Positions 8,874-61,671 are shown, counted from the first letter of the stretch. The stretch is 64,000 bases of DNA from Octopus sinensis (GCF_006345805.1 NC_043007.1:44330001-44394000), one strand, 5' to 3'. Translations and numbers: made by a program. The notes: generated by a model not told the origin, from the sequence alone.

Positions 8874-8927
<54 letters not shown>

Positions 8928-39715: not shown

Positions 39716-39989
39716 TATATTGGGTGTGTGTATGTGTTTCTGCATGCGTATGTGTGTGTATCCTTGTCTTGACATTACATGATAGTTGTAAATAAGTGTC
39801 ACTGTCATACAAGTCATTTGTTTCTAATCTTTTGTGAAAACATGTCTGGCCATGGTGGCGGGGGTGGGGAATATTACCTTGCTTGGTGACAAGTGAGGGT
39901 TGACAACAGGAAAGGCATCTAACCATAGGAAATCTGCCTCAATGAATTCCATCTGACTCATACAAGTATGGAGAAGTGGATGTTAAAAC

Positions 39990-40315: not shown

Positions 40316-40428
40316 GTACTGTTTCTATTGCTGATGTTGAGAGATTTATCTCCAAATCCTAAACATGTTGTGTCACTGCCCTATTAATTAAAATCTCTCT
40401 CTCTTTTTTTTTTTTTGCCGTTATTCAG

Positions 40429-40576
40429 GAAACTGCAACAATGGTTTTAAAGACAATTGAAACTTTGTCCCTTTCAACCATCCAAGGTACTTGTACAATT
40501 GAGCTTCTTCTGGGAGACATCACAAGTCTTGAGATGAATGACAAAGTTGATTTGCTCATCGTGTCAGCTTTCCCTA
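40429..40576 (+). CDS. Coding exon 1 (12-nt leader, ATG at 40441): start of macro-like domain, [45 protein letters not shown]
   Basis: Acceptor T-run..ttattcAG|40429; donor cctA|GTAAGT at 40577; macro-type GDIT and D-hydrophobic strand motifs. Confidence 0.85.
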
Positions 40577-42340
40577 GTAAGTATCTAAGCATTAAATATT
40601 CACATTAAAATTGGCTGAAAATTAAGCAACGAGATGGTTAAAAAACATTAAAAACCTTGCTACAGGAGTCAGTGTGTTGTATTGCTGTTTTTTTCATTGT
40701 GAATGTTGTATCATTAATCAAATATTGATCTATCATTGTGTATTGTCTCACTGATAAATCAATGTGTGTTGTTACATTGTTATATGATTGATCAATCATT
40801 AAATGTTTTATCATTGATCAGTCATCATGTCTGTGTCATTGATCAGTGATTTTATGTTGAATTTTGGATCAGTCACAGTCTGTGTTGTATCATTCATTAG
40901 ACATTATATAGTATATCTCTAATCAGTCTATTGTATGTTGTATCATTGCTCTGTAACTATGTGTTATATCATTGATCATTCATGGAGTATTGTGTCACTG
41001 ATCAATCATTGACCAACCATTGATTTTGTATCATTTATCAATCATTAGATGTTGTTTTACTTTTTGTCACTGATCAGTTGTTATGTGTTGTATGATTGAT
41101 CAATCATTGTGTGCCATGCTGTGGGACTGAACCCAAAACCACATGGTTGGGAAGCAAACTTCCTTAGCCATAGGCCTACAGGCTTTGGTCAGTGCAGGGC
41201 TTATAGTAGAAGACACTTGCAGAAAATTTCACACTGTGGAACTGAATCCAAAACCACATGGTCACATAGCAAACTTCCTTAACCATACAGCCATGCCCGT
41301 ATCTTCAAGCTGTGGTCACCCCATAGCTACAGCAGAAGACACTTGTCTGAGGTGCCATGTTGTGGCATTGAACCTAAAACCATATGGTTGAGAAGCAAAC
41401 TTCTTAACCACACAGCTAAGCCTATACTTGTTTGTCATTCTGCTCTTCAGTTTCCCCTTTTTATATACTCTTAAACTGTACAACTTTCATAATTTATACC
41501 CAAATGTTCTTTTATTTCAGATAATTACAACACTACGAGTAAAACTGTAATCCAAGCACTGAACAAGAATCTAAATGTTGATGTTTCTAGGCTTGCTGCG
41601 GATAAAGAATTAGATTTAAGGAAATATTTTTCTTGTTGGTTATCCAAACCATTACCAGAAGATATTCCTTTTTCAAGACTTGCATGTTTTGAAAGGTAAT
41701 ATTACTTTTTGTATTAAGTTTTTATCCTTTTCTTCTATCCTGCCCTGGTCAGCTTTGCCCTTCACCCCCACTCATCATAGTTGATGGTATCCTCTACTCC
41801 CCACCCCCTCAAAATTGCTGGACTTGTGCCTTAATTAGAAAAAAATGATAATAATATATCTTTTATCTTTTACTTGTTTCAATCATTGGACTGCAGCAAT
41901 GCTGAGTTTAATCGAATGAATTTCCCTCAGTACTTATGTTTTTCTAAAGCCTGATACTTATTCTATTAGTCTCTTTTACCAAATTGCTAAGTTCAAGCAG
42001 TGACGGAACACTTGCCCAAGGTCCCAGATAGTGGGAATGAACCTGGAACCATGTGGCTGGGAGACAAACTTCTCACCACACTGCCTCAAGGATTATTCTC
42101 AATAATAATAATAATAATGATGATGATGATGATGATGATAATAACAATATGGCTTCTGATAGGCGCTGGCCCTCATGGCTTCTGATCTTAACTGATTGGA
42201 AGTGTTATGTACATTATTTTGTTTTGGTATAAAAGATGGGCTACAGCAAATATTCTGAATACTAGGGTGGGTGCAATCATATACCAAAATTTTAAACCCT
42301 CCTCCTCCTCCTCCTCCTCCTCCTCCTCCTTCTCCTTCTC

Positions 42341-42371
<31 letters not shown>

Positions 42372-43320
42372 TTATTATTATTATTAGTGGCATTTAGTCC
42401 ATCTCTATGTTCTGAGTTCAGATTCTGCTGAGGTTGACTTTGCCTCTCATCCTTTTGGGGGCTCAATAAAATAAGCAACAGTTGAGTATTAAAGTCAATG
42501 TAATCAACTTACCCACTCCCATGAAATTGCTGGCCTTGTGCCAAAATTTGAAATCATCATCATTATTATTATTATTAAGGTGGCAAGCTGGCACAATCAT
42601 TAGCTTGCTGGACAAAACACTGCTACGCATTTTGTCTACATTCTGAGTTCAAATGCCACTTGGTCAACTTTACCTTTCATCCTTTCAAAGTTCCTTCATA
42701 GTTGGCATTGTTTTAAATATTTCTATTTTTATTGAACTTCATTAATTTCATGTTTTATGTTACAGAAACCTAGGCAGTAGTATTTATGATCAAATCGGAG
42801 ATATGTTTCGAGGTTTTATGCCAATATTCAATTCTCAAGACACAACAGTAATAACTCCTTTACTTGGTACTGGAAACCAAGTGAGTATCTTTTTATTCAG
42901 TTTTTGTGTTCTTACATAATTCTCTATGGAATACTTGGATTAATTAACTATCATCATCATCATCAACATGCTAACATGAGTTGGACAGTTCAAAAATATC
43001 CAATACGTCTAAAGACAGCACCATACTAAAAGTGTCTATTTTGGAATGGTTTCTATAGCTAGATGTCCTTGCTAACAGTAACCAGTCTACTGAGTGTACT
43101 GGGTGTTTTATTCATGGTACCAGCACTAACAAGGTAACCATGCAGCTCACAAATGAGAGATGTTTCAAGTAGCTCTGTTCTGCTTTAATGACTCTCATTG
43201 TTGGTGGTAGATAAAAAGGAAGACCTGTTTTCATGGAAGATTGGAAACAAATAATATTGCTTGTATGATGGTGCTACACATTTACAGTCATTACATGATG
43301 TCAAAATAAGAACACACACA

Positions 43321-43378
<58 letters not shown>

Positions 43379-46300
43379 TTACATATTCTTTTCTTTTATT
43401 CTTTTACTTACTTCAGCCATTTGACTGTGGCCATGCTGCAGTGCTGCCTTAAAGGATTTTAGTTGAAAAAAATCGAACCCAGGACTTATTTTTTGTAAGC
43501 CCAGTACTTATTCTATCGGTCTTTTTTGCTGAACCACTAAGTTACTGGGACATAAATACACCAGCATAGGTTGTCAAGTGATGGTTGGGGAACAAACACA
43601 GACACAAAGACACACACACATACAGCAGGCTTCTTTCAGTTTCTGTCTACCAAATCCACTCACAAGGCTTTGGTCAGCCCTAGGCTATAGTAGAAGACAC
43701 TTGCCCAAGGTACCACACAGTTAGACTAACTGTGGTTGGGAAGCAAGCTTCCTACCACACAGCTTTGCCTGCATCTCCACACAGCCACATATATTGTTAG
43801 CTTCATCATCATTTTAGTGTCCACTTTCCCATGCTTGCATGGGTTGGATGGAGTTTATTTAGGCAAATATTTTACAGCTGGATGTTCTTCCTGTCACCAA
43901 CCTTTACCTGTTTCCAAGCAAAGTCATATTTTGCCTTGAACATACGTATATTCTTACAGAATATCGGAAATGAATGACACTGCTTGTATGACAGTGGCAA
44001 TTATTTATTAGTCATGTCAAGACAAGGTGACATAAACACATAAACATGCATGCATGCATACATACATCCATCCATCCCATTATCATTCCTGATATAAAAA
44101 ACAAATGACTACATGCTAGGGTCTGCAACATCAAGAGATATTAATGTAACCCATGATTTCTTTGTGGATTTATGCTAAAATGTTAACAATGCCAAAAAAT
44201 CAACTGGAATTAATAACATTTTCAATTGACATAGGAGTGGAATTTGGCCAGAAGAAATATTATTTGATTGTTGAACAGGGAAAGATAATCTCCCAGACAC
44301 AAAATAATCTTACTATCTTTCTTGTCTCACACAAAGACTGCTACAGGTACCTAGGCATTGATGAAAATATATCATACCAAGGTACTGTGAATAAAGATAG
44401 TGACCCAAGAATATTACACCAGACTAAGAAAAATATGGCAGTCTGAGCTCTCCTTTTACAACAAGACAATATCCCACAATGCATTTGCAGTACCAGTGCT
44501 GATTCCAACTTTTGGGATACTTGACTGGTCTGTAGAAGAAATCCACTTCATAGACATTAACACCCACAAGATTCTAACATCAACTGGAAATCTCTACAAA
44601 AATAGTGATGTTGACAGGCTCTGCCTAAGAAGAGATAAAGGAAGTAGGGGGCTTGTGCTCTGTGCAGATAGTCTTTGAATGTTACACAGTCTCTCTCAGA
44701 CAGCACTTGTTAAACAACAGCAACAAAATAAATACATTAATTTAGTGCTGGAAAGTGAAGGGAACATCCTACGCGTTGGAAATGAACTCTTCAGGAAGTA
44801 CTCTTCCCCCGATGAGCTCCCATACAACCCCAAATCAGCCAGACTAGCTTACTTAGCTTACTTCAAAGAAGACCGGAGGGGAAGTGCTCAAGTATACAAA
44901 AAAAAAAAACATGCATAGGTATGTTACTTGAAGACTTCAATAAGATAGAGACATTGACATGAAGCCTCTCTTGGACTCGCAACTGCTACATCACACCATA
45001 CTTTGAAGGCTATGCATTTGCAATCCAAGAACAGGAGATTACTGCTAAACACCTAATCAACAAAAGATACAGTGAAGCTCTTGGAGTTCCAAGATGCAAC
45101 TGTAAATGTAGATTATGTAATATTTCTGTGGACGACATCACACATGTGATTAGCAGCTCCCAAAATTGTCATCAAGGTACTACCTCCCTATGTGACATGC
45201 CGTTGCAAAAACCAATATATAATGCCATTTGGGAAAAAGACAGTCCTGGAATAAATAAAGAGTATTTCCCTGTATTTGAATATGTACATAAACATCAACA
45301 CAAGAAATACTGGTGGAATATTCCCATCAAAACATCTGTCAAATGTAAACATAACAGGCTGGATATTGTTGTTTCGGACAGACAAGAAAAAGTATGTGCT
45401 GTCACAGAGGTTAGCTGTCCAGCTGATGTTAATATCTTTGAAAAGCAGAGAAAAAGAAGATAATTATGAACAACTGCATCAAAACCTCCAGATTTTATAT
45501 CCGGATTACAAATTTACATTTATATGAATAATAGCTGGAGCACTTGGTTTTGTAAGTAGTCTAGATAATCTTGAGTTTTCAGAAACAGAAATCAACCAAC
45601 TGATTCACACATTACAAATACAATCTGTAAGCTAAACACTAAAACTATGCAAGACTTTTCTAAAGTTTAAAATGTGACATTGTTTTTGTTATCTACATTC
45701 CAAAGATGGAGCTTTCTATCTTTGTTAGAAACCAGCTCCTTCTTCAGAGGAAGAATTTAAACAATCAAAAACAGAAGAGAGAGAGAGACACACACACAAA
45801 CACACACATGCACGCACACGAGGTCACAGAATGTGTCATAAAAGAACTTTGATTGGGAGCAAACTTCTTCACCGCATAGCTATACCTTCACCTAAAGATG
45901 GTGCTTAATTGCTGGAAACAAAACAAAAATATTTCTATTTCTCTTTTTTTCTTTTTCTTAATTTTGTAGGGCTTTGGTTATATTCCAGTTCTTAACACAA
46001 TGGTTGAGTCAGCTTGTAACTGGATGAAAATTGGTCTTCCTTTGAAAAGCTTCAAGATTGTACTTTACACTAGTAATATAAATGAAATTAGTAATTCCAA
46101 TAAAAATTGTCTTGAGAGGTTTAAAGTGCTGAAGAAAACCTGGGAAAAATCTACCCTTTCAAAGGTAGTATAGCTCTTTCTTACATTTTTACATTATTTG
46201 TTATTAGTGGCAGAAGCAATATTGGTTCAAAATAGTAACCGTTGAATCATATTTAAAGTAGATACATCATTGAAAGCCTCATAAACTGTAGTATTAGTCT

Positions 46301-49300
46301 GGAGAAAACAACTGTTATAGATGTATAATATTAAAAAACACCGAGACATATCAGCAGTAGATGAAAATCATCTGGCAGCAGTGGTGGCATTAAATTGTTA
46401 GGTTCTAGAAAGTGAGATATAAAACTCCATGTGAGAACCACCTCAGACACTACACAGAACCCTGTCACTCAGTTCTATATGTGATGTTTTTGTACTTGAT
46501 TTGCCTGTCACAATTCTGAACAATTATCATACAATTAACTGAAACAATATTTCTATATTACTCAGTGAAAACTTTAAATTATCACAAACATAATAATATG
46601 TATATTTTTCATTTCAATTCATAGTGCATATGTAAATTTATTTATTTATGCGCTCTTTTCAAGCCTAGCCAGGCTCATGGACCTGGTTTCCCAGATTCTG
46701 TGGCATATGTGTTCCCCCCAGCTGGATGAGATGCCAAGAAACAGGAAGAAAGAGTGAAAGAAAGTTGGAGCGTAAGAGTACAACAGGGGTGCCCCCCCCC
46801 CACCCCGACTGGAGCCTCATGGAGCTTTTAGGTGTTTTCGCTCAATAAACACACACAACGCCCGGTCTGGGAATCGAAACCGTGATCCTCCAACTGCAAG
46901 TCCGCTTCCCTAACCACTGGGCCATTGAGCCTCCACACATATGTAAATATGGAAACATTATCATTAGCGAGGTCATTTTCAGTTTAGCACACAGCCTTCC
47001 TTCCTACTATTGTGTATCACCAATGATGCTCTAATGGCTACTACGTACTCTTCGTTGAAACAATGAATTCTCCCTTCTTGCATCATCAGATTAATGAATA
47101 ACTCCTACTTAGTTCCCTGACAAAAGCTCATCTGTGTCATCAGTTTGGAGCTTTTCTCAAAGGTATACAGGTTGAATTGCCACCCATTGTTTCACATCGG
47201 TGAACGTGTGTGACTAAGTGATTGGGATATTCAGCCAATGATCGTAAAGTCATGAGTTTGATTACTGGCAGTGCATTGTGTCATTGTGTCCTTAAGCAAT
47301 AAACTTCATTTCATGATGCTCCAGTATACTCAGCTGGCAAAAATGAGTGGTTCCTGTATTTCAAAGGCCAGCCTTCTCATGTTCTGTGTCACACTGAATC
47401 CCTCTGGGAACTACATCAAGAGTATGCATGTCTGTGGAGTGCTCAGTCCCTTGCATGTTAATTTCACGAGCAGGCTGTTCCATTGGTTGGACCAACCGAC
47501 AGAAGCCTTCATCAGCGTAACTGATGAAGTGCCAGTTTTACATCTTAAGCCCACAGCTAATGCAGTCTGCCAAGCCAATACTTGTCTAGGAGGTATTAAG
47601 CATGATGGCTTACTTTAAACAATGATTGTTGTTATGACTACTTTTTAATTTTTTTTACAGATTGCCAAAAAAAATCATGTGAACGATGTGTATATTTCCT
47701 ACTGCAATACAGATTCTAAGAAGGCAAATTTGTTAAAAGCTTCATTGGAAAAGAATAATCCAAGCATAAGTATTTTCAATAAAAGGATAAAAGTTGACAG
47801 AGATGTTTGGCCTGAAAAAATATACTCTTGTATGTTTGGATGCAAGTGGTAATTCTATTTTTCTTATTTTTCTCAGTATTAAATATTTAATATAATGTTA
47901 TTTTTTGCTGATACAAAGCAAGGCCACAAATTTTGGTGGTCAGTTTAATAAACATCATTACTTAATACATTGGACACTGGTAAGATAGAAAATAGAAGGA
48001 ACCCATGTGGCATTACAACTCATAATGTAATTGTATGAACTTCAATACTGCAAAGTGTTACCATTTCTGCTATGTACTATGGACAGTTATTGAGAGAGCC
48101 TTTACAAGAACATTCTACCTTCTAGAAATTGTAGCCAAATCTCCCTCATATCAAATCCTGCCATCTTTAAATAAAGGATACATTAGACAATGTTAGTCCT
48201 AGACAAATAAAAGAATGGGATGGTCATGGATTGAATGACTTTGATCATAAATGTGCTCAATCAGAGCTTACTTGGGGCTAAACAACAACAGCAACAATAA
48301 TGTGAACAACAACAACAACAACAACGTCATCATCATCATCATCATCATCATCATCAGTTAACATCTGTTTTCCATGCTGGCATGGGTTGGACAATTTGAT
48401 CAGGGATGGCAAGCTGAGGGGCTGCACCAGATTCCAGTCTGATTTGGCATGATTTCTATGGCTGGATACCCTTCCTAAATATCCTTTTAAGGCAGTGCTC
48501 CAGCACGGCCACAATCAAATAACTGAAATAAGTAAAAGAATAAAAGAATGTGTGTGTGTGTCTATGTGTTGCCTTCTCTTGACATCACATAATAATTGTA
48601 AATGAGTGTCACTCTCATACAAGCAGTGTTATCTCATTTCCAGTATTCTGTGCAAACATGTTTGGCTATAGAGAAGTACAACCTTGCTTAGAAATGATTA
48701 AGGGTTGTTGAAAGCAAGGGTTCTTGACCAGAGAAAATCTGCCTCAGTAAACTCTGTCTAACCCATGAAGCTTGGAAAAGTGGACATTAAAATGATGACA
48801 AGGAGGAGGAAAATCTGATTTGAGAGAGATTTGGTTGATCTTTCTAGATAGTTGAGTGGCCATCTAGAGGTTTCTTTGTTAGCTTGTAAAGAAATCATCA
48901 TTCACAGAGGTGAATTATCTAAAATCCTTCATTCTTCTTTACCAACAGCATTGTTATAATTTTAACTACATCCTACTTAAGTTCCAAATCCTGCCAAGAT
49001 GAATTCAATATGGCTCTCTGCTATAGACGACAAGCTGAAGATATTATTTTGGTTCCCTGTATACTGAGACAATGGAAAATCTACCCCCAGTTATAAGTAA
49101 CATACAATATATGGATTGTCGGTAAGTTTCTTCTTGTACACATTTTTATTTTTGTGTTTCTGTATTTAAAACATCAATATAATAATCTTTTTTACTAAAG
49201 GCAAAGGCCTGAAATTTTTGGGAAGGGACTAGTTGATTATATCAACCCCAGTGTTTCACTAGTGCTTAATTTATTGACTCCCAAAGGATGAAAGGTAAAG

Positions 49301-50451
49301 TTGATCGCGGTGGAATTTGAACTCAGAATGTAAGGATGGATAAAATGCCACTAAGCATTTTGCCTGGATGCTAATGATACTGCCAGCTCATAAATATCTG
49401 TATAATAATAACTGATATAAATGTTGGATGGTTGATTTTACCAATCATACTTTACATCATTGAGAGAAAGTGGACAGTAAGTGAAAGAGTGATACAGAAA
49501 GAGTTAACATAAGGTGTACAGGATGAGTTCACATACTAGGCTTTGTGGTAGGTAATTAGTAGAAGAATGCTACACACACACATGCACATATACACACATT
49601 AAGAGAGAAAATCACAGAGACAAAAGAGGAGGAGGAAGAGGAAAGAGAGAGAGAGTAAATGACAGAATAGTTACAGGAAGAATTATACAAATGAGAAATT
49701 TGTTTTATTTAGTTTTATTTTAGGGTAATAAATATTTTTCTTTTTAAAGTTAGTATTAATTTCACCCTTTTGGATAAGCACCCACAAATTTCATTAAAGT
49801 AGAATTATAATTATAGTATGTGTCATATTTCTTGATATTACTCATGGTGGTAAAAGTATACTGCCAAAGTTACCCCTCATATGATGGGGTTCCTATAGCT
49901 AGGCTATTTCTTTAATTGGAACTTGCTGTTTTTTACCTTCTTTTTTTTTTTTACTTTAGATTAAATGAAAATGAAAATATTAAAGAAAAGTTTCGAAGTG
50001 TTTCTGCGGATATCAATAAGAAGCTACTTCCATCATTACTGCGTCCCACAACTGCTCAAGCACAAACATCTAAGAAAACAACATATGATATTTTTGTGTC
50101 TTACCCTACAAAAAACACAGAAGAAATGAAAGTAGTGTATGAAATTTTGACTGAACACAATAGTGACTTGAAGATATTTTACGATAAATTGGAATTAGAG
50201 ACAGGTATGATTAACCGTTTAGCATTCAGAATACTCAATCAGATTTAATACTCTTTTACTTGTTTCAGTCATTTGACTGTGGCCATGCTGGAGCACTGCC
50301 TTTAGTTGAGCAAATCGACCCCAGGACTTATTCTTTGTATGCCTAGTACTTATTCTATCAGTCTCTTTTGCCGAACTGCTAAGTTATGAGGACGTAAACA
50401 CACCAGCATCAGTTGTCAAGCGATGTTGGGGAGACAAACACAGACACACAA

Positions 50452-50490
<39 letters not shown>

Positions 50491-53400
50491 CATATATATA
50501 TATACGACGGGCTTCTTTTAGTTTCTGTCTACTAAATCTACTCACAAGGCTTTGATCGGCCCGAGGCTATAGTAGAAGACACTTGCCCAAGGTGCCACGC
50601 AGTGGGACTGAACCCGGAACCATGTGGTTCGTAAGCAAGCTACATACCACACAGCCACTCCTATGCCTGTTTATTCATTCATATTGCCTTGAATTGGTAC
50701 TTACTCTGTTGTTTACGACAATGAGGGTTCCAGTTGATCTGATCAATGGAACAACCTGTTCATGAAATTAATGATCAGGTGGCTGAGTATTCTACAGACA
50801 TGTGTACACTTAATGTAGCTCTCAGGGAGATTCAGCGTGATACAGAGTGTGACAAGGCTTGCCCTTTGAAATACAGGTACTACTCATTTTTGCGAGGTGA
50901 GTGGACTGGAACAATGTGAAATAAAGTGTTTTGCTCAAGAACACAATGCATCACTGGGAATTGGACTCATGATGACCTTACGATTGTAAGCCAAATACCC
51001 TAACCACTAAACCATGTGGCTTCACTTGCTTTGAATTAATCATGTATTTCTGCCTTCATTTTTGTTAACTCTCACTTTCTTTCTCTCCCTTTCTTTCTTT
51101 CCCTCTCTTCTTCTCCCTCTCTTCCTCTCTCTCTCTCTCTCTCTCTCTCTGGCTGGGTAACCATGTACATCTATTTCTGTCTCTCTGTCACACTCTAACC
51201 TTTCATCATCTGACACAAGATCTCCTCCAACGCCCCCTTCTCTCTCAAAAATTCCTTTTCTTGCAAAGTTACTTGGTGACCCTGCTAGTGCAGGTGCCAC
51301 TTAAAAAGCACCCAGTTCACACTGTAAAGTGGTTGGCATTCAAAAGGGCATCCAGCCATAAAAACCATGCCAAAGCAGACACAGAAGCATTGTGCAGGCT
51401 CTTTTGCCTGGCTAGCTCCTGTCAAACTGTACAACCCATGCCAGCATGGAAGGAGGACGTTAAATGATGATGACGATGACAATGATGATGATGATAATAA
51501 TGATGATATCTCATAGTTTCAGAATTTCACTGATGTAGCTGTTTACTTTTAGAATAACATTACAGGGTAGGTGTGAGAGACTTGATCTCACTGGTTTTAA
51601 CATAAAACAGGTAGAATATTTGGGTTGGATATGACTGGTTTGAACTTGCATAAAACATGATTTAATAAGTTTTATCTAATGTGGAGCTGATGTTGATAAA
51701 AAAAAAGAGTGAACTGCAGGGCAAGAAGTTGATAATGCAGCTCCACCACTTCCTGTTGACTGAGGAAAAAATATGGTTAAAGGATTGGCCATATTATAGC
51801 TGAAGGTCTGCAATTCTAAATGTGAACATAACATTAAAATTACAAGAGGACTTCATAAGTTCACTCTCTATATTGAGTTGTGCAAACAGATGGTGTGCCA
51901 TTAATGTATAACAACTTTGGATAAGTTCTTCCCCTCTCGAGTAGACACTACTAATGACATTGTCAGTGTTGTTGTTGTTGGTGGTGGTGGCGGTAGCAGT
52001 GGTGGTGGTGCTGTTGCTGCTGATGGTGATGATGATGACGACGACGGCGGCGGCGATGACGACGATGACGACAACGATCCAGAACAACTACTATAAGGCA
52101 TCCCAGTCTAACATTCTTACAGATCTGCTGATCCACAACTTTGGAGTGGGATTTTTTTAATGACTCTGAAAGGATGAAGGGCAATGTTGTCCTCGGACAG
52201 ATTTGAACTTGGGTTACAGAGAATTCTATCCAGCATTTTAATGACTGTTAATTAGACACTTTATCAGATGTGTTATCTAAGATTATATTATTCAACATGT
52301 CTTCTAGTTTAAAGGTGATTTGATGGAGATTTGACTGTTGTTTCATGTAGATCAAGTGACCATGTAGCAGTTCTCTCAATGACATATCTATGGTAGTGTC
52401 AGAGGCAGTCATTTAACTCCCAGTGCACCAAGCTGCTGATCTAGGTTTAATACCTAGTTGTAGTTACTCTTATTCTGCCCTATGAGAGCCTTTTGAAGAT
52501 GAGTGAACAGCACAACTCCTAAACTCAACAGAATTTATAATCCATCAATAGATATCTCTGTTCTTTAAAAGTCAACCAATTGTCTCTATTTATCATGCTA
52601 GTGTAATCAATAAATACATATTTGTTCTTTATTATATTTCAGGTAGTGATTGGCAGCAATCCATCTACAAAGCTTTGGAATGTTCTAAATGCTGTGTCAT
52701 CCTCATTGCACCAGCATACTTCGAATCTCTTATGTGCCAAGAAGAATTCAGTATTGCCATTGCTTTGAGTATCTCTGAAGAAAGAGTGAGAAAACCCTTG
52801 TGATTAATTTTTTAAATTTTGTTTTTAAGTTTTTTTTGTTCTACTGTTTAACCCTTTTGATAACCAACCTACCCACCCTAACACAAGATTGTCTTATGTT
52901 TTGGTGATACAAACACTGACATTTTAAAATGTTGATATTTAAATTAAAACAAAGCTGTAAGCTGAAAGAATTGTTCACATGCTGGGTGAAATTTCATGTT
53001 CTGAGTTCTAATTCCGCTGATATCGACTTTGCCGTTTGTCCTTTTGGGGTTGATAAAATAAGTACCAGTTAAGCACAGGAGTTGGTGTAATCAACTTACA
53101 CCGCTGCTCTGAACTTGCTAGCCTTGTGCCAGAATTTGAAACCTATATTTAAATTAAAACCATCTATCAAAACTTTATTTAATGAATCTTATTTTTTAAA
53201 GTTAGATTTCAAACACCAGGAATAAAAATAAAGACAGATTGGTTAATAATTAAATGCTTACAATTCTTCATTATCTTTTAAATTAATTGAAACATATCTG
53301 TAAAATATTTCTGTCGTAGTGTAACAATTCTCAATTTCATTGATACAGAAGGCTGAAAAGATTGGCTGTAAATAGACTTTACTTTTCTAAGAACAAGAGG

Positions 53401-56400
53401 ACAGTACCCATCAGTTGTAGCTTTAGTCATGAACCTTGCCAGTCAGCAGACAGCCATGTTTTAGATACCACTTCTAAGCCTCGTTTTCAACTCTCTGTAG
53501 TAATATTCACATGATCATGTGATCGACCAGGCTATCAAAAAAAAAAAAAAGATGTTGCTACACATCACTGGTCACAATGCACTTTGCATTGTTTTAGCCT
53601 TCAAATGATGCCACTCTGCTGGCTAAGTGAGCAGGTCTACAGAAGAAAGAGTGAGAGAAAGTTGTGGCAAAAGAGTACATCAAGGTTCACCACCACCCCT
53701 TGCCAGAGCCTCGTGGAGCTTTCAGGTATTTTTGCTCAATAAACACTCACAACGCCCGGTCTGGGAATTGAAACCGTGACCCTACAACTGCAAGTCCACT
53801 GCCCTAGCCACTGGGCCATTGTGCCTCCAGCTGTAGTAATAATAACAGTAGTAAATATAGCATGTATAGTTATAGTAATAATATCAGTAATTATTACCAC
53901 AATTTCATCAGAAGTGTCTAAGTGAAAGGATCAGATAGATTTTTGAGTTCTTCAGTTATGAATTTGTTAAATAATGACTCATCGTTACATCCACATAAGT
54001 CCTTACAGCAACTTTTCTGTTTTTGATGTATGCTTTTTATTGCACTAAAGTTAACATTAAGATTTTGTACATCATAGACAAAGAGGTTATGTATGGTTCT
54101 GCAATTTTGAAGTTTGATACTTCCTCAGTGCTGATGACTAAGTTGAGATGTTTTTTTTTTTGTTTTGTTTTGTTTTTCTTTGTCTCTCAGTAAATTGTTG
54201 AATATTTTCCCAATTGCCTGCATGTACTTGTAAGGTAATTTAACCAAAAATGTGTTACTTTGTCACATCCTACTGTTCTATTTATATCTGGTCATTTTAT
54301 GGTCACCTTTTAAATATTCCACCTGCTAGTTCTGTGTAAGCCAAAAATTTAGGAGTGAAAATTTGTTGAGGAAGATTTGGCTACACTAAAAAGGGGAATG
54401 TGTAAGATGAAAAACTAAAAGAATACAAAGCAGAATCTTTGGGAAGTCTGCCATTACTGGAATAATGTACTTGGTCTCACTAAGAATATGACTTCTTGGA
54501 GTTTTCCAAATTCCTTATGTGTTAGTGCTATTTATCTCTAGATGATTCTTGATCAGAGATCCTACCTTTGATCAAACACATACCAGAAATGATCATTCCA
54601 TATTTTTTGTCAGACATTGTGTATCTAGGTTTACATTGTCCAACAGATCCATTTTTTTCTTTAGATAGAAGAATGAGATTCAAAGAACATTTGATTGCTA
54701 TTTCTATCTGACCAAATGACCACATACAAGCTCCATAATTGGTTCATCCCACATGTAGTATGTCTAAGAAGGTTTAACCAGAGCAGTAACAAAAACACAA
54801 CAAACACCCAACATCCTCACACTCAACTCTAAAATATAAATACAAGTGTTTGAGACTAAAAGAATAACTCAATTGTCCTTCAGGACAACAGGCTAGTGGT
54901 TAGGACCTTATATCCAGTTGATAAAATAAGTTTCAGATTTAATCCTTAGCCTAGCTCAAGAATATCACTTGAAGACTGTTGAAGAGAACACCCATTGAAA
55001 TGTGTCATTGCTATGTTCAAGTTGAGAAAAATACTCTGATTTACAGACATCACTTTGAAAATTCGTTTCTGAAAAAGTATACTTACATAATGGTAATTTA
55101 TAGGATACATACAGATGCACACACATACATACATATATACATATGCATACACACACATATATACATACATACACATGCATACATACATACACACATACAT
55201 ACGTTCATGCATGCATAGGCACACACAAACACACTGACCCGCACACATGCGCACAAACAAAAAGGAACGCAGTGTAAATAACGGACAGAGTCAAGACTGT
55301 TGGAAAGGTTGCAAGATGCAACGAAAATTTTAGGAAAATAAAAATAAGAAATAAGTGGAATTTTTACCGGTGCGTGTGTTACATTATAAGGCACAAAAAG
55401 AAAATGACTCTCCCCAGACACAACAGAATATGCTTCAACACACGAACTCATATAAAGAATCTTGCAAACCAAATCCAAAAACGAACAAATTAATTTAATT
55501 TAACTCAAATCAATTAATTGTGTACGACAATTATGTAATTATACATTCAATGATGTTTATCATTATGAAACAGCTATTGAATACAATTAAAGTGTGAACT
55601 ATATGTAAAATATATGCTTTTCTCCATTTCTGCCAAATATGTTTGCTCTTAAAGATCATTTTAGCTGATTATGTATATACCTGCATGTCATCCCACTTGG
55701 ATTTACTGCAATTTAATTACGTTAGAGTTTAACGATCTATTATTAACTGAACTCTTAATTACTGTCAGTTTATAATTTGAGTTGTATATATCAATCTCTT
55801 ATGAGGATTTTTCAGAAAAAATATAGACATACCAAAACCATCACTTGCAAGTGAGCATGACTTTGTAACATGTACTATGCTTCTGATGACCATTTCACTT
55901 GAATGTTAATGAATTAATCAATTTAATTGTTCATTTCAGACAAATCCTATGGTTTTGGTACCTGTCTGCATTGATGATGTGCCGTCAACACCTCAGTGGT
56001 TTGGTCCTCTACATATGATAGATGCCCGGGGAGATTGTTTGGTTCCTGTTCTGAGCTGCTTATCACCTCTTCTAAATAAATGCTACAAAGACCAAACTTT
56101 GCAACATGAATTTAGTTGGATGACGAGTAAAAGCAAAGTAAGTGTGTCATATCTCTTTCTCTCTCTCTCACGCACACAAGCACACATACACACACATGCA
56201 TGCACACACACACTTCACTTGCATATACCTTCATACATATAATATATATATTTATATATGTATATATGTACATGTATGTATATATGTGTGTGTGTATATA
56301 TATGTATATATTTACATGCATATATATATATATATATATATATGTATCTATATATATAAACGGCAAAATGCCTGCGTGCGTGTCCTTTATTCAAATCCAC

Positions 56401-56805
56401 AATTTTTTCAGTTAGAGGGCTCGCACTTTCTATGGTCATTCAAAACTGTTCAAGGTTGGTTGTGCACATCTTTACATTTCCCCAGTCACCCAACAAAGCC
56501 ATTAAAAAATCAATTGAAGTGAATTTTTTGTGAATTCTCTATCCTAAACCCAATCAAAATGCCTGAAACTTGATATGCCAATTGAATGCCAGCTAGCTGT
56601 ATGTGATTGGTCGGAGATTTGGACAGTACTCGCGTGTATGTGTGCACGCACGCAGCTGTATATGCATGCACTAGCACATAGTGCTAGTATATATATATAT
56701 AATACACACATATATACTTACATATATATATATGTATATATGTATATATATGTATATATATGTGTATATATATACATGCATATATATATATATAATATAT
56801 ATATG

Positions 56806-56862
<57 letters not shown>

Positions 56863-58663
56863 TATATATATATTATATATATATATATATAATATATATA
56901 TATGTATATATACATACATATATATATGTATATATATGTATATATACATACATATATATATGTATATATATATACATGTATATATATATATACATGTATA
57001 GATATGTACACACACACACACACATGCACATGTACACCTGTGCACGCATGCACACACACATACTCTTCTTATATAATCTAGATTTTTAGAATATGCACAC
57101 TATCACTACATGTGAAAGAAGACTGAAAAAATTGGTGTTTGGATTGGCATTTAGCTGTAAAATATTGCCTCAAAAGTGTCCTGTCCAATGTGCCAGCATG
57201 ACAAAGTGAACTAAAAAACAATGGTGGTGGTGATGGTGACAATGATTATGATGATAACGATGATGATGATGATGTCAACAATGACGACAACAAAGACACA
57301 CCATTTGCGGTTAAGAAGTTTGCTTTGCAACTATGTGGTTCTAGATTTGATCTCTCATTAAGGCATATGGGTTTAATGTTTTCTGCTGGAGGAGCCTCAG
57401 GTTGTTCAATACCCTGTGAATGGAATTTGGCACTTGGGAACCGTGAAAAAGTCATCATTTAGGCACAGATGTGGCTGTGTGATAAGAAGCTTGCTTCCCA
57501 ATCACACAGTTCTGGGTTCAGTCCCACTCTCTGGCACCTTGGGCAAGTGTCTTCTACTATAGCCTTGAGCTGACCAAAGACTTGTGAATAGATTTGGTAG
57601 AGGGAAACTAGAAAAAGCCTGTTTTATATACAGGGGTTGGACAAAATAATGGAAACACCTTAAAATTTTAAACAAATTTATTTTAATATGGGGTAGGACC
57701 GTCTTTGGCAGTAATTACAGCTTGAATTCTATGAGGTATGGGTTCATACAAAGTTTGAATTGTTTCCAAAGGAATTTTTGTCCATTCTTCAGCTTAAACA
57801 GTCTTCAGTTCTTGGATATCGACTCCTTACTTGTTTTTCTAAAATGTACTATAAATGTTCAATAATAGTGAGATCTGGAGACTGTGGTGGCCAGATAAGA
57901 TGTTCAACTTCACTAGAATGTTCCTCGTGCCATTCAGTAACAACTTTAGCTGTGTAAATTGGTGCATTATCATCCTGAAAGATTGTGTTTCCCTCCGAAA
58001 ACAGTTCCCCAACCATATGATGAATTTGATCACATAAAATGCTTAAATAGTCTTGACTACTAATTCTGCCATGAAGGGAAACCATTGGGCCAGTGGATTT
58101 CCAAACTATAGCCTCCCAGATCATCACAGATCTTCCCTCATGCTTAACAGTTGGAAGAAGGCAGTCTAGGTCAAATGCTTCTTTTGGATGTCTCCACATG
58201 TATACTCAGCTGGTGGTTGGAAATAATGTAAAGAATGACTCATCCAAGAAAATAACATTCTTCTACTGCTCTAGGGACCAATTCTGTAGGTTTTTACTCC
58301 ACTCGAAATGCTTTGCAATGTTTGTTTTTGAAAGTAGTGGTTTTCTGACTGCAGCCCTCCCATGAAATCCGGCTTTGTGCAGCTCCCAGTGAACAGTTCT
58401 TGTGGAAACTAGGTTCTGAAGGTGGTCATTAAGCTCTATAGTAATTTTGGGAGCTGTACTTTTGTGATCATTTCTTACAATTTGTGTAAGAGTCTGATGG
58501 TCCCTATCTGAAACTTTTGGTTTTCTTCCAGAGTTTTGTTTCGATGAGGAGGTTTTTCCCTCTTTCTTAAAGGCTGTCATTTTTGGGAAATGTCTCCTAC
58601 TTTAGCTCCAGGTCAACCAAAGCCTTGTGAGTGGATCTGCTAGACAGAAATTGAAAGAATCCA

Positions 58664-58699
<36 letters not shown>

Positions 58700-58747
58700 A
58701 TGTATGTCTGTAAATATGTATATATTTCTCTATCCCTCTCTCTCTCT

Positions 58748-58785
<38 letters not shown>

Positions 58786-59883
58786 CTATACATATATGTG
58801 TGTCTTTATGTTGGTTTGTTTATGTCCCCATAACTTAATGTTTTGGCAAAAGTGACTGATAGAATAAGTACCAGGTTTTAAAAAAGTACTGGGGTTGATT
58901 TCTTTGTCTAAATCTTTCAATTTGGTGCCCTGCATGGTTGCAGTCCAATGACTGAAACAAGTAATGAATAAACAATAAAGATATTGCAAATTATCATTAT
59001 TTTCCTTCCTTTAATTGAAGAGCGAGACATTTATAATTTACTTACCTCTTTTTCTTTTATTTCACAGTTGAACAATGGAAATATTACTCTCTTGGATCAA
59101 TTATCACTTCTCAGACAAATTCAACTTGAAGATAATTACGAACTCAAGGGAAAAAAGATAACTGCTAAAGCGGATTATGATATTTATAAAAAACCATGCA
59201 AAATACTCTTTTGTTTTGCACCCCAAGATATGAAATTTGCTGCCATTTTGATTTCAATTCTTCAAGATCTTTTCTCAGAGATGCAGGTCCTTCTCTTCAG
59301 CACATCAATTCATGACAGATTGGCTTTACTTGAAGAAGCAGATGTAATTGTAATGTTTGTGTGTGATGATTATTTTGAATCTTCAAAATCTCTTGAGGAA
59401 CTAAACATAGCTTTCAATCGTCAACGGAAATCGAAACAGAGACTTTTGCATTTTGTCTGTACTGAAAAAATACCAACATTCCTTTCATATTTTCAAATTT
59501 TACCCTATAATGTAGTGTTTAGTGACAGCTGCTGGCATACAAAGAGGGGTAAATATGTAAATACAAAGGGTATGGTTACTGTCACTGTTTCAGAAATATG
59601 TGGAAAATATTCATATGAAATTCCTGAATATATGGCTTTGCAGAAATTAGCTTTAGATATTATTTCTTCCGTTTCAGCAAAGTAAGATATAAATCTTTTT
59701 ATTTAATTGATTTATTAATTATTTTATATATTTATTTATGTATTTATTTATTGTTAGAGCAGTAGAGAGGTAGAAATGGCAGTCTATTGGATTTTTCACA
59801 TACAGTGCAGCTAGGACTAAGTCAACAAGAATTACTCTTCATTTCGAGGATAATCTAGTTGTTATTTCTTGTTGTAAAATGAT

Positions 59884-59917
<34 letters not shown>

Positions 59918-61671
59918 ACTGTGGTTCTGGGTTCAGTCCTACTGCACGGCACCTTGGGCAGGTGTCTTCTATTATAGCCTTAGGCTGACCAGGGTCTTGT
60001 GGGTGGATTTGGTGAATAGAGACTGTGTGTGTGTGGTGTGTGGTGTGTGTGTGTGTGTGTACGTACGTATGTATGTAGAAAAAACACACATGTTTACATT
60101 AAATTATTTTCTTTCAGATCTTCAGATAATAAGGGAAATCTTGTTAATCTTTTTAACATACAACCAGAAGAGACTCAAGTTTTGTCTTTAGAAGAAGTAA
60201 GTGAAGAAACTTTCTACTAATGAAAACAATTTTTAAACCTATTTTTGCATTTCAATAATCCTCAACTAAACAGTTTTCCAGTACTTTCTTCCCTGAAGTA
60301 AGCTTCACCTTTCTTGTTAATATTTTCCCCTGTGGTCACATGTATATGAGGTAATAAGGTTGGCAGAGTCATTAAGGCAATAGACAAATTACCTTAATGT
60401 GTTGAGGTACTAATTTGGCTCTTTACCCTCTGAGTTCAAATCCTATCAAAGTCATCTTTATCTTTCATCTTTCTGGGGTTGATAATATAAGCTATCAGTC
60501 TATGATGTCAGATTGGCAGAAATATTAGTTTTCCCATTCTTTCCAAACCCATCGCTTTTCTTTTATGGCTCTGTTGACTTCACTATTCCACCACCATATC
60601 ACCTTTGATCTGGCAGAATCTTTGCTCCAACCACAGACTTTGTCTGTTGCCATCAGTTGATTATCCCATAAGGACTTCCAATTTTCTTCTATGTCATATG
60701 CCTCTGACTCTTCTGCACCTTTAATTATAGGTTTGTTAAATCAAAGTCAACCTGGGGCTAAACAAGAACAATATGAACAACAACTCTTAGCCCTTGAGCA
60801 GAAAGAATACATTTTGACATGGAAAATACCAATTCCTAATATCAGCCAGAACTTTGGCACAATTAAAATATATTTAATTATCAATATTAATTTGTCAATA
60901 TTTTTCTTTAAATAATGAGTGGTTATTTGTAATTCTTTTCTTTTTTTCTTTTTCAAGTGTATTATAACATGGCAGAAAGAAAAAAGTGATGATGATGTTC
61001 ATGAGGAAGAAAATAAGAAAGAAGAGAAAGAGAGAGAAGATGAAAAAGAAGAAAAAGAAGATAATAAGTATGAGAAAGAAGTAAATAAGAAAGGGGAAGA
61101 AGATGAAAAAGAAGAAACTAATATTAGGAAAGAAGAAGAAAAAGAAGAAAATGTACAAGTAAAAGAAGAAGATACCCAAATTAAAATAACCTTGGTGGAG
61201 GAAAACTTGGAAAGCAGGAACGGATTTGATGGAAAAGTAGAAGACAGTACTGAAGTAAATGATAATAATGGATTGGATTGTAACAGTTCAGTTAGTGTGT
61301 GCTGTGTAAAAAGATTTTCTAATGGAATGACAAACCAAAACTCTGAGGCAGGCAACAAGAGTTCCTGTACAACAATGGATGACATGGCACTCAAGATTTC
61401 TGTAGATGATGAAGACACAGAAAATATTTTAAATGAGGAAGCAAGAAATGAGCCTAGCACAGAAAATTTACCAAATGAAAATGAGAATGAGAATAATGAA
61501 CTTAATGAAGGAATAATCCCAGAGACTGAAAGTATTCCTGTTCAAGATGTTAAAAGTTCTGAAGATGTAAATAATTCCTCATCATCAAACACAAAAAATG
61601 ATGAAAATCCCTGTGATAATAAAGCAACACCTAAACATCGCAAATCAAAACATATATGTATAATTCTCTAA
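40441..61671 (+). CDS. 12-exon gene: macro-like domain + 3x TIR domain + acidic disordered tail + CaaX; ~991 aa after restoring one base in exon 6
   Basis: Manual splice: join(40441-40576,41521-41695,42766-42880,45970-46164,47661-47848,48949-49121,49960-50204,52643-52785,55940-56137,59068-59681,60118-60196,60958-61671). All introns are GT-AG with pyrimidine-rich acceptors. Phases 1,2,0,0,2,2,1,0,0,2,0 are consistent if exon 6 is 174 rather than 173 nt. ATG context gcaacaATGG. Confidence 0.85.
40660..41110. repeat. Decayed minisatellite (core tgttgtatcattgatcaatc) in coding intron 1
   Basis: More than 12 imperfect recurrences of tatcattgatca-like words. Confidence 0.65.
41521..41695 (+). CDS. 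Coding exon 2 (macro-like): [58 protein letters not shown]
   Basis: Acceptor ttttatttcAG; donor AG|GTAATA; open in phase 1 to 2. Confidence 0.85.
42766..42880 (+). CDS. Coding exon 3 (macro-like): [39 protein letters not shown]
   Basis: Acceptor ttttatgttacAG; donor CAA|GTGAGT; PLLGTGNQG resembles the macro Gly-rich diphosphate-binding loop (P-x-x-G/S-T-G-x-x-G). Confidence 0.85.
43400..43775 (-). mobile_element. SINE family A copy (intron 3)
   Basis: Reverse-complement family match. Confidence 0.8.
44090..45680 (+). mobile_element. R4/Dong-like non-LTR retrotransposon remnant (RT C-half, CCHC knuckle, restriction-like endonuclease) in intron 3
   Basis: Across frames: [81 protein letters not shown]...EVSCPAD. 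Confidence 0.85.
45970..46164 (+). CDS. Coding exon 4 (end of macro-like domain): [65 protein letters not shown]
   Basis: Acceptor ttttttcttaattttgtAG; donor AAG|GTAGTA; 195 nt, phase 0-0, no stops. Confidence 0.85.
46645..46935 (-). mobile_element. SINE family E copy; second copy at ~53410-53830
   Basis: Shared gagcctc.tggagcttt..caataaacac.cacaacgcccggtctgggaat.gaaaccg..ccctaaccactgggccatt. Confidence 0.7.
47205..47540 (+). mobile_element. SINE family D copy (intron 4)
   Basis: tRNA-like head plus family core. Confidence 0.7.
47661..47848 (+). CDS. Coding exon 5 (TIR1 N-half): [62 protein letters not shown]
   Basis: Acceptor ttttttttacAG; donor TG|GTAATT; TIR box-1-like DVYISY. Confidence 0.85.
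48949..49121 (+). CDS. Coding exon 6 (TIR1 C-half) with an apparent 1-nt deletion at 49055-49057: [37 protein letters not shown] / [21 protein letters not shown]
   Basis: Acceptor ttcttctttaccaacAG; donor CG|GTAAGT at 49122. First half is TIR betaC-alphaC (SCQDE). Second half is TIR-like only in the -1 frame, which is also the frame that matches exon 7 phase. Confidence 0.8.
49960..50204 (+). CDS. Coding exon 7 (linker + TIR2 N-half): [12 protein letters not shown]...[41 protein letters not shown]
   Basis: Long T-tract acceptor ttactttAG; donor G|GTATGA; lies inside ORF 49916..50248; YDIFVSY box 1. Confidence 0.88.
50250..50628 (-). mobile_element. SINE family A copy (intron 7)
   Basis: Reverse-complement family match. 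Confidence 0.85.
50715..51025 (-). mobile_element. SINE family D copy (intron 7)
   Basis: Family match. Confidence 0.7.
52643..52785 (+). CDS. Coding exon 8 (TIR2 core): [48 protein letters not shown]
   Basis: Acceptor ttattatatttcAG; donor AGA|GTGAGA; TIR_2-type W..I..A and S..C..E motifs. Confidence 0.87.
55940..56137 (+). CDS. Coding exon 9 (TIR2 C-end + linker): [66 protein letters not shown]
   Basis: Acceptor tcatttcAG; donor AAA|GTAAGT; same frame as ORF 55949..56242. Confidence 0.85.
56347..56687 (+). mobile_element. Non-autonomous Helitron-like element
   Basis: A|TCTATATATATAAA start; CTAG|T end with terminal hairpin CTAGCAC-ATA-GTGCTAG; no TSD. Confidence 0.5.
56688..57062. repeat. 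(AT)n/(ATAC)n microsatellite
   Basis: Direct inspection. Confidence 0.95.
57631..58585 (-). mobile_element. Tc1/mariner DNA transposon (DD36E spacing), frameshifted, 5' end lost; in intron 9
   Basis: TA|CAGGGGTTGGACAAAATAATGGAAACACCT terminus at 57631; HTH fragment 58263..58580 ([16 protein letters not shown]); catalytic fragment [33 protein letters not shown]. Confidence 0.92.
59068..59681 (+). CDS. Coding exon 10 (linker + divergent TIR3): [11 protein letters not shown]...[21 protein letters not shown]...[33 protein letters not shown]...[11 protein letters not shown]
   Basis: Acceptor tttcttttatttcacAG; donor AA|GTAAGA; lies inside ORF 58984..59685. Confidence 0.87.
60118..60196 (+). CDS. 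Coding exon 11: [27 protein letters not shown]
   Basis: Acceptor ttattttctttcAG; donor GAA|GTAAGT; phase 2 to 0 matches both neighbours. Confidence 0.75.
60958..61671 (+). CDS. Terminal coding exon 12: acidic E/K/N/D-rich low-complexity tail ending [12 protein letters not shown] (CaaX)
   Basis: Long pyrimidine tract then AAG|60958 (alternative in-frame CAG|60976); lies inside ORF 60919..61671; stop TAA 61669-61671. Confidence 0.75.
   Translation, partial: CIITWQKEKSDDDVHEEENKKEEKEREDEKEEKEDNKYEKEVNKKGEEDEKEETNIRKEEEKEENVQVKEEDTQIKITLVEENLESRNGFDGKVEDSTEVNDNNGLDCNSSVSVCCVKRFSNGMTNQNSEAGNKSSCTTMDDMALKISVDDEDTENILNEEARNEPSTENLPNENENENNELNEGIIPETESIPVQDVKSSEDVNNSSSSNTKNDENPCDNKATPKHRKSKHICIIL

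Follow-up and report, generated by a model that had tools for sequence, protein, structure and literature searches.

A 64,000-nucleotide stretch of the Octopus sinensis genome (GCF_006345805.1, NC_043007.1:44330001-44394000; hereafter the window, with positions counted from its first letter) holds a gene for a protein that consists of an N-terminal macro-like domain, three TIR domains, an acidic tail and a C-terminal CaaX box. From sequence comparisons, the gene is best placed in an unnamed family, for the most part bacterial, in which the macro-like domain and one TIR form a dyad and of which it is the animal branch. The coding gene lies on the + strand at 40441-61671 and comprises 12 exons, with AG at every acceptor and GT at every donor (Table 1). 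From 40.4 to 61.7 kb, the coding pieces lie within stop-to-stop open reading frames (ORFs) of the + strand, and the splice sites were placed by hand and script and then corrected against orthologous proteins. Aligned with the annotated O. vulgaris locus for CAI9730352.1 (988 aa), all exons show 98.4-100% identity. The protein derived from the junctions matches CAI9730352.1, and its C-terminal 680 aa are 100% identical to O. sinensis XP_036363339.1. Because of these two correspondences, the octopus locus is, as judged from the alignments, a genuine gene that is annotated in the sister species. The original prediction, made from the window sequence, had placed 12 exons on the + strand between the same start and stop, which the splice sites and the O. 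vulgaris identity bear out. Orthologue matches across phyla (E = 1e-66 to 1e-110) put the feature far above chance. The gene is single-copy, with no paralogue in the 2.72-Gb, 13,516-contig assembly in which the window is contig C11:44330001-44394000. Comparison with the orthologous proteins from O. vulgaris, O. bimaculoides and Argonauta ruled out an exon 5 donor at AA/GTGGTA, and the ORF at 60661-60915 has the wrong phase for exon 11, for which the orthologues use the segment given in Table 1.

The reading frame is interrupted once. The spliced coding sequence (CDS) has 2975 nt, which is not divisible by 3, and exon 6 reads GGTTCCCTGTAT in the O. sinensis window versus GGTTCCCCTGTAT in O. vulgaris, a 1-nt deletion in a C run. 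As written, the frame ends after 318 codons at a TAA (49094-49096), 12 codons past the lesion. A length of 991 aa results only on read-through of the frameshift, and the consistent phase over ~991 aa that had been predicted does not hold. Because the exon 6 frame is broken, the RefSeq O. sinensis model is confined to 680 aa from the ATG at 49072, and no frameshift-corrected model has been issued. The macro-like domain and TIR1 are apparently left out of the RefSeq O. sinensis protein set.

One possible explanation is that the -1 frameshift is real and marks a recently inactivated allele in the sequenced O. sinensis, which would yield a 318-aa product of the macro-like domain and a truncated TIR1, or undergo nonsense-mediated decay. 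The shortened C run, the stop close behind it and the restriction of the RefSeq annotation to the C-terminal part agree with this explanation. However, it is the single lesion in a CDS of 2.98 kb, the other exons are free of stops and nearly identical to the intact O. vulgaris gene, a homopolymer is a typical site of long-read consensus error, and the gene is single-copy and kept across phyla. We hold inactivation to be a serious possibility, somewhat short of even odds. Because the lesion is the only one, lies in a homopolymer and has an intact counterpart in the sister species, the interrupted frame would look the same whether it stems from an error in the consensus or from an allele inactivated very recently. 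A weak donor, CA/GTTATA at 49089/49090, would restore the phase (980 aa), but the conserved C-terminal end of TIR1 would be lost. It is contradicted by the O. vulgaris, O. bimaculoides and Argonauta proteins and merely masks the frameshift. In practical terms, a single-base indel splits or truncates the macro-TIR gene in the O. sinensis reference annotation.

Exon and domain borders coincide: exons 1-4 encode the macro-like domain, exons 5-6 TIR1, exons 7-9 TIR2 and exon 10 alone TIR3. An AlphaFold2 model of aa 1-207, built from a 35-sequence alignment, has a predicted local distance difference test score (pLDDT) of 91.9 and a predicted template modelling score (pTM) of 0.90. When this model was searched against the PDB with Foldseek, the top 50 matches were all macro domains (E ~1e-8, template modelling score 0.55-0.73), among them macroH2A1, Af1521, the macro domains of PARP14, PARP15 and PARP9, YmdB, MacroD2 and macro-carrier fusions. 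Macro domains were again the only matches for the independent full-length model of the O. bimaculoides protein. Searching the family profile against PDB sequences gave weak matches to macro domains only (Af1521 at E = 0.003, PARP14, MACROD2 and macroH2A; E = 0.003-1), collinear on the N-terminal GDIT motif and the P-x-x-x-x-G loop 2. No Pfam family matched aa 1-207 at E<=10, including Macro (PF01661), and no PADLOC or NCBIfam model matched even at permissive thresholds. With the three-layer alpha/beta/alpha fold present in the AlphaFold2 model and recovered by Foldseek, modelling confirms aa 1-207 as an atypical macro domain by fold.

The ADP-ribose pocket motifs of this domain are kept in part. 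The adenine-contacting Asp of GD(I/L)T (G25-D26) and loop 2 (P135...G140-x-Q142, P..L.TG.QG) are retained, while NAAN with its catalytic Asn is changed to VSAFP and there is no Gly-rich loop 1. An insert at aa ~55-103, forming an extra helix/strand, holds the family-specific invariant motifs C84-W85-x-S87 and C101-F102-E103. Across the family, S42, C84, S87, C101 and E103 are strictly invariant, and D26, K74, D77, R119 and Q142 nearly so. The best structural likeness is to reader-type macro domains (macroH2A1.1, Af1521, PARP14/PARP15/PARP9), with which the octopus domain has the GD(I/L)T motif and the loop 2 glycine in common. It differs from them in its low identity (10-17%), in the lack of a Pfam Macro match, in the loss of both NAAN and the GGG loop, and in the extra insert with its invariant Cys, Trp, Ser and Glu residues.

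Pfam TIR_2 matches TIR1 (~213-328) at E = 1.9e-10, TIR2 (~367-500) at 3.7e-19 and TIR3 (~566-728) at 3.8e-5, the last being below the gathering score. A phmmer search of TIR3 against PDB sequences returned nothing meaningful. Since hhalign comparison of orthologue alignments gives TIR3 a probability of 98.9% against TIR2 and 99.4% against TIR1, it is a genuine TIR paralogue. In the full-length AlphaFold2 model, which was made from the O. bimaculoides protein (94% identical to the O. sinensis read-through protein), all three TIRs are folded (pLDDT ~85-94), and TIR3 is a beta-alpha-beta domain with an extra hairpin.

Each of the three octopus TIRs has a Glu at the catalytic position on helix alphaC (the WC..E[LF] position): E288, E444 and E634. 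The TIR2 motif CQEEF aligns to WCL(D/E)EL of the plant TIRs AtTIR and Roq1. We counted the residue at this position over 25 animal sequences plus five bacterial dyad TIRs. Glu occupies it in TIR2 in 24/25 animals, the exception being a garbled Saccoglossus model, and in all five bacterial TIRs. In TIR1 it is found in 6 of 24 animals (five cephalopod sequences and Tubulanus), with Gln in 14, and in TIR3 in 18 of 23, with Asn in scallops. These alignments suggest that TIR2 alone is conserved as catalytically competent across animals and bacteria. The earlier proposal of signal synthesis by the TIRs goes too far if applied to all three, given the Gln in TIR1 of most orthologues and a conserved competence restricted to TIR2. 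Many Glu-bearing non-TLR animal TIRs produce cyclic ADP-ribose (cADPR) in E. coli (bioRxiv 10.64898/2026.04.20.719644).

The tail (aa 736-983) contains 28% D+E, carries a net charge of -39 and is predicted to be disordered (pLDDT <30). The C-terminus consists of a polybasic KHRKSKH followed by CIIL and the stop, with Cys at -4 and aliphatic a1/a2 residues. By the established rule, L as the X residue of a CaaX box predicts geranylgeranylation, and binding to membranes is favoured by a polybasic stretch. CaaX ends (C-x-x-[LIVFS]) occur in about 18 species of six phyla, usually after K/R, in the variants CIIL, CKLI, CQIL, CTVL, CHLL, CSIL, CVLL, CSLL, CTIL, CVLI, CVFI, CALV and CCVS. Squid- and cuttlefish-type orthologues (decapodiform transcripts and Acanthosepion pharaonis CAE1317658.1) stop just past TIR3 (...CLVPLP / ...LIEQN). 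Octopods and most other phyla have the acidic tail and CaaX box, and their lack in decapodiforms could mean that this lineage lost the membrane anchor or that its 3' end is an alternative one. The octopus protein is soluble, has four folded domains and shows no transmembrane segment by hydropathy (maximum over 19 residues 1.6, within the TIR3 core), and a Pfam scan gives TIR families only, with no leucine-rich repeat (LRR), no Ig ectodomain as in IL-1R receptors and no death domain. On several points the original prediction was right: the macro-like N-terminus stands as a fold, three TIRs are present with the third divergent, the acidic tail ends in a CIIL box that is conserved across phyla, and the TIR-only Pfam matches and the hydropathy scan agree that the protein is neither a TLR nor MyD88.

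Table 1 Coordinates of the gene and of elements around it in the window (O. sinensis; aa numbering on read-through of the frameshift).
Feature	Position	Strand	Content
Exon 1	40441-40576	+	aa 1-46; start codon, onset of macro-like domain; 99.4% identity to O. vulgaris
Exon 1 motifs	40513-40518 (G25-D26 of GDIT)	+	GD aligned to adenine-binding GDIT of Af1521; invariant S42 also in this exon
Exon 2	41521-41695	+	aa 46-104; macro-like; family-specific invariant C84-W85-x-S87, C101-F102-E103
Exon 3	42766-42880	+	aa 104-142; macro-like; loop 2 equivalent P135-LLGTG140-N-Q142
Exon 4	45970-46164	+	aa 143-207; end of macro-like domain (W160, G164-L-P-L, K171) and C-terminal helix; phase-0 intron after
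Exon 5	47661-47848	+	aa 208-270; first half of TIR1; donor after AAGTG, giving GCKC as in orthologues
Exon 6	48949-49121	+	aa 270-328; second half of TIR1; E288 at 49001-49003; carries the frameshift
Frameshift site	49055-49057	+	CCC here, CCCC in O. vulgaris (-1)
Exon 7	49960-50204	+	aa 328-410; disordered TIR1-TIR2 linker, onset of TIR2 (YDIFVSY)
Exon 8	52643-52785	+	aa 410-457; TIR2 core; conserved catalytic-position E444 at 52744-52746, motif CQEEF
Exon 9	55940-56137	+	aa 458-523; end of TIR2, helical linker
Exon 10	59068-59681	+	aa 524-728; entire divergent TIR3; E634 at 59398-59400, motif SLEEL; extra beta-hairpin insert
Exon 11	60118-60196	+	aa 728-754; short conserved post-TIR3 segment (NLVNLFNI...)
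Exon 12	60958-61671	+	aa 755-991 and stop; acidic low-complexity disordered tail, polybasic KHRKSKH
CaaX box CIIL	61657-61668	+	end of exon 12; stop codon 61669-61671
Microsatellite	39939-40380		~440 bp, triplet-type; open in six frames, pseudo-ORFs rich in I/T/H/V/M/D/G
Decayed Tc1/mariner-type transposase	57849-58601	-	intron 9; two ORF pieces (HTH_Tnp_Tc3_2 E = 4.9e-13; DDE_3 E = 1.4e-6)
Reverse-transcriptase-like ORF	16656-18361	+	long, upstream; by eye a non-LTR retrotransposon fragment
Reverse-transcriptase-like ORF	31443-33446	-	long, upstream; by eye a non-LTR retrotransposon fragment
Reverse-transcriptase-like ORF	36075-37460	+	long (461 aa), upstream; by eye a non-LTR retrotransposon fragment, resembling an inverted copy at 32274-33110
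Group of ORFs	44150-45463	+	intron 3; several of 95-166 aa, no Pfam match; probably a repeat-derived remnant

The microsatellite ends ~60 bp upstream of the start codon, where a putative 5' untranslated region or promoter would lie. The retrotransposon fragments in Table 1 are of the type without long terminal repeats (LTR).

A protein of this kind might also act without catalysis, as a membrane scaffold or adaptor whose tandem TIRs recruit TLRs and MyD88-like adaptors while the macro-like domain reads ADP-ribosylation marks. The best sequence match of TIR1 among solved structures is the non-enzymatic TIR of MyD88 (E = 4e-4), TIR1 has no catalytic Glu in most orthologues, and membrane anchoring fits a receptor-proximal role. 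An adaptor role of this kind has been proposed for the invertebrate 'ecTIR-DC' proteins, conserved TIR proteins that vertebrates lack (Gerdol et al. 2017, as cited in PMC6321704). However, the Glu of TIR2 is kept in nearly all of the animals and in the bacterial relatives, which have no TLR pathway. Moreover, TIR1 and TIR2 are each 35-38% identical to bacterial dyad TIRs, compared with 24% to each other, and are nearer to these bacterial TIRs than to animal adaptor TIRs. We regard an adaptor role as distinctly unlikely.

Full-length homologues of the same architecture are found in many invertebrates. They include cephalopods (O. bimaculoides, O. vulgaris, Argonauta and cuttlefish/decapodiform transcripts), gastropods (Haliotis, Biomphalaria, Batillaria, Lottia and Candidula), bivalves (three scallops, Mactra, Solemya and Pinctada), the brachiopod Lingula, the nemertean Tubulanus, the hemichordates Saccoglossus and Glandiceps, and the echinoderms Acanthaster, Lytechinus, Amphiura and Antedon. 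The cephalopod gene is expressed, as decapodiform transcripts were recovered from public RNA runs (contigs of 2.4-2.9 kb, up to 75 contigs). The orthologues are labelled 'uncharacterized', 'hypothetical' or 'unnamed', or carry automatic names such as 'TIR domain-containing protein' and, in UniRef, 'ADP-ribosyl cyclase/cyclic ADP-ribose hydrolase'.

In a maximum-likelihood tree of the macro-like domain, the animal sequences form one clade with a Shimodaira-Hasegawa-like approximate likelihood ratio test (SH-aLRT) support of 88, or of 100 when a Porites sister sequence is included. Within this clade, cephalopods, gastropods, bivalves, nemertean plus brachiopod, and then ambulacrarians follow the order of the species tree. 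A topology that mirrors the species tree argues for a single ancient origin followed by vertical descent and, on a non-exhaustive survey of absences, for loss in some lineages, vertebrates among them. The Porites sequence is a partial coral protein (Porites evermanni CAH3154722.1, 204 aa) whose macro-like domain branches next to the bilaterian clade as its sister, at 100% support. Unless this sequence is a contamination, the gene would be older than Bilateria.

The N-terminal domain also occurs in bacterial proteins of ~400 aa, in which one TIR follows ~13 residues on. In phmmer searches the octopus protein matches these dyads at E ~1e-30 with 28-34% identity. Examples come from Draconibacterium, Panacibacter ginsenosidivorans, Ferruginibacter and Gordonia aquimaris, annotated as 'toll/interleukin-1 receptor domain-containing protein', and from Chitinophagaceae. 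When 1.84 billion representatives were searched exhaustively with the profile, 1372 clusters matched at E<=1e-3, 311 of them at E<=1e-30, and most are bacterial. Among 78 non-animal representatives of 280-480 aa, TIR_2 is present in 74, and the catalytic-position Glu is at least 90% conserved. The bacterial dyads keep the invariant residues of the octopus N-terminal domain (G25, D26, S42, C84, W85, S87, C101, E103 and W160), and they have, as in octopus, a TIR_2 domain right after it, the catalytic Glu and a C-terminal 'LP.YM..VQY.DCR' motif. They differ from the octopus protein in having one TIR, no acidic tail and no CaaX box, and some carry extra N- or C-terminal modules. No Pfam, NCBIfam or PADLOC model covers the N-terminal domain of the dyads, and no member of the family has been characterised.

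Longer members of the family are fused to Hsp70-like ATPases, Ser/Thr kinases, FHA, VipA-VipB, or CHAT and NB-ARC/STAND modules. Fusion architectures with such modules (kinase, FHA, CHAT/NB-ARC and others) are typical of bacterial conflict systems. In three bacterial proteins the dyad is at the C-terminus of VipA-VipB (type VI secretion/contractile sheath-like) fusions, some of which add an N-terminal Ser/Thr kinase and FHA. This unusual architecture suggests NAD+ signalling that would be coupled to the state of the sheath. Six further bacterial proteins combine an Hsp70-like ATPase with the dyad or a Ser/Thr kinase with the dyad, or are arranged as macro-TIR-CHAT-NB-ARC or macro-CHAT-...-TIR.

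No conserved operon was seen around the bacterial dyad genes in the four neighbourhoods examined. In Panacibacter ginsenosidivorans (CP042435.1, locus positions 5343-9221), a Patatin phospholipase gene, a gene for a MAP3K_TRAF_bd/TPR-S protein and the macro-like+TIR gene are co-directional, with IS110 and rve transposases downstream. A second dyad locus has Patatin and TPR-S genes nearby, and the other two are solitary among housekeeping genes. It is possible that the Panacibacter set is a three-gene defence island.

The obligate neighbourhood of the macro-like domain and TIR (74 of the 78) would also suit a different division of labour, in which the macro-like domain is itself an enzyme that hydrolyses, matures or transfers the TIR product, or an ADP-ribose adduct of protein or nucleic acid, making the dyad a two-step catalytic cassette. 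Its invariant polar or nucleophilic residues S42, C84, S87, C101 and E103 are absent from reader-type macro domains. Many macro domains in general are hydrolases, and for those of TIR systems an action on cADPR has been predicted (PMC9503650). However, VSAFP stands in place of NAAN with its catalytic Asn, there is no Gly-rich loop, and the nearest folds include the non-catalytic macroH2A and the binder-type macro domains of PARP14/15. We consider a catalytic macro-like domain unlikely, though not negligibly so.

The family recalls several known systems. In type II Thoeris, according to a recent preprint, the TIR makes His-ADP-ribose (His-ADPR) and the macro domain of the effector is its receptor (bioRxiv 10.64898/2025.12.03.692087). 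A TIR enzyme, a macro domain and a membrane location are thus common to type II Thoeris and the octopus protein. In type II Thoeris, however, two genes encode the ThsB TIR and the ThsA Macro-TM protein (TM, transmembrane), which is a pore-forming effector, whereas the octopus protein is one chain with three TIRs, a lipid anchor and no effector. A separate-gene operon, a ThsA-type macro sequence and a transmembrane effector part, which define type II Thoeris, are all missing here. A PADLOC scan of the octopus protein at E<=1 gave TIR models only and no ThsA model. The original prediction of a Thoeris-like ADP-ribose module is upheld as far as the macro/TIR/CaaX architecture goes. It needs correction in that the closest relatives are single-chain bacterial dyads, not type II Thoeris, and no ThsA match was found.

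Taken literally, the original prediction would make the octopus protein a whole type II Thoeris circuit within a single chain, in which the TIRs make a His-ADPR-like signal that their own macro domain senses to trigger a membrane effector. The same two kinds of domain are combined with membrane association, and the macro fold is confirmed. Against this stand the missing ThsA-type signal, the lack of any transmembrane or pore-forming effector domain, and the bacterial relatives, which are single-chain dyads, usually solitary or sensor-attached, and not ThsB/ThsA operons. A sensor in cis of its own product would also offer no obvious signal amplification. We judge such a circuit to be very unlikely. 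By analogy, a working likeness to Thoeris, with an ADP-ribose (ADPR)-type molecule made by a TIR and read by a macro domain, is plausible, and the octopus protein may work like a Thoeris- or SARM1-type NAD+ system and yet be no member of Thoeris.

SARM1 is a cytosolic, membrane-associated animal TIR protein with a catalytic Glu and an N-terminal regulatory domain that binds NAD+ metabolites. The octopus protein resembles it in combining TIR, N-terminal regulator and membrane association, and the SARM1 TIR is a weak match of octopus TIR1 (E = 0.03). SARM1 differs in having an ARM regulator, SAM octamerisation and one TIR, where octopus has a macro-like regulator, no oligomerisation domains, three TIRs and a prenyl anchor. 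The bacterial TIR-SAVED and TIR-STING proteins and the oyster TIR-STING (6wt6, 'Metazoan TIR-STING fusion') likewise join a nucleotide sensor and a TIR NADase in one chain. The octopus sensor, however, has a macro fold and not a SAVED or STING fold, and the order is sensor-TIR, not TIR-sensor.

Together, these results point to a membrane-tethered NAD+-processing enzyme in which TIR2 is catalytic, TIR1 and TIR3 are assembly partners, the macro-like domain is a ligand sensor and the tail is a flexible spacer. We put the probability of this model at roughly 0.55. The geranylgeranylated protein would sit on the cytosolic face of a membrane, with an acidic disordered spacer of ~250 aa before its anchor. 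There TIR2 would cleave NAD+ to ADPR or to a cyclic or conjugated ADPR product. The active site of TIR NADases forms only with neighbouring TIRs, and TIR1 and TIR3 would mainly offer such surfaces. The macro-like domain, which has neither the hydrolase Asn nor the Gly-rich loop but retains the adenine-contacting Asp and the second phosphate loop, would bind an adenine-nucleotide or ADPR-type ligand and gate TIR activity or feed back on it. The biological role would most likely be innate-immune or cell-death signalling.

Several points weigh against this model. All function in the family is inferred, and the arrangement of the domains relative to each other is of low confidence (full-length AlphaFold2 pTM 0.54). 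That TIR1 and TIR3 complete the active site of TIR2 is pure inference. A Glu at the catalytic position is compatible with inactivity, as IL-1R9, IL-1R10 and TLR2 retain it and are inactive (bioRxiv 10.64898/2026.04.20.719644). Binding of ADPR by the macro-like domain is not assured, since the Gly-rich diphosphate loop is absent, and the invariant C84, S87, C101 and E103 could mark this domain as an enzyme. Anchoring is not universal, because decapodiform transcripts and some shorter gene models are without tail and CaaX box. Finally, the ORF is broken in the O. sinensis reference.

The original prediction recognised no characterised gene with this architecture, and databases and searchable literature agree. 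Literature on macro and TIR domains in molluscs and invertebrates, on ecTIR-DC, on Thoeris in animals and on a TIR atlas, as far as it could be searched, contained no description of a macro-TIR family. The ecTIR-DC families are conserved invertebrate TIR proteins that, according to PMC6321704, are widespread, absent from vertebrates and of unknown function. The octopus family may be listed among the multi-TIR ecTIR-DC proteins of Gerdol et al. 2017, and at most as a multi-TIR protein, because the macro fold is invisible to Pfam-based surveys. More generally, the macro-like domain represents a subfamily of more than 1000 clusters that current domain libraries do not see, and its recognition would improve the annotation of bacterial conflict systems and of invertebrate immunity.

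Whether animal TIRs beyond SARM1 act as second-messenger enzymes is an open and active question, addressed in 2026 preprints, and the family with one macro-like domain and three TIRs lends itself to testing it. The gene is ancient, single-copy and present from echinoderms to cephalopods, it keeps the TIR2 Glu and a fused macro fold, and its bacterial homologues are testable. We tentatively speculate, while thinking it a good deal less probable than the enzyme model itself, that the dyad is a self-contained NAD+-based immune module not recognised before, a bacterial defence or signalling unit of one protein that animals inherited before the protostome/deuterostome split and refitted with three TIRs and a prenyl anchor, and whose new macro subfamily serves as a dedicated receptor or regulator of a TIR-made ADPR-type messenger. 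If so, the octopus protein would be the first TIR signalling enzyme of animals to contain its own reader of small molecules, and a direct functional counterpart of Thoeris in animals.

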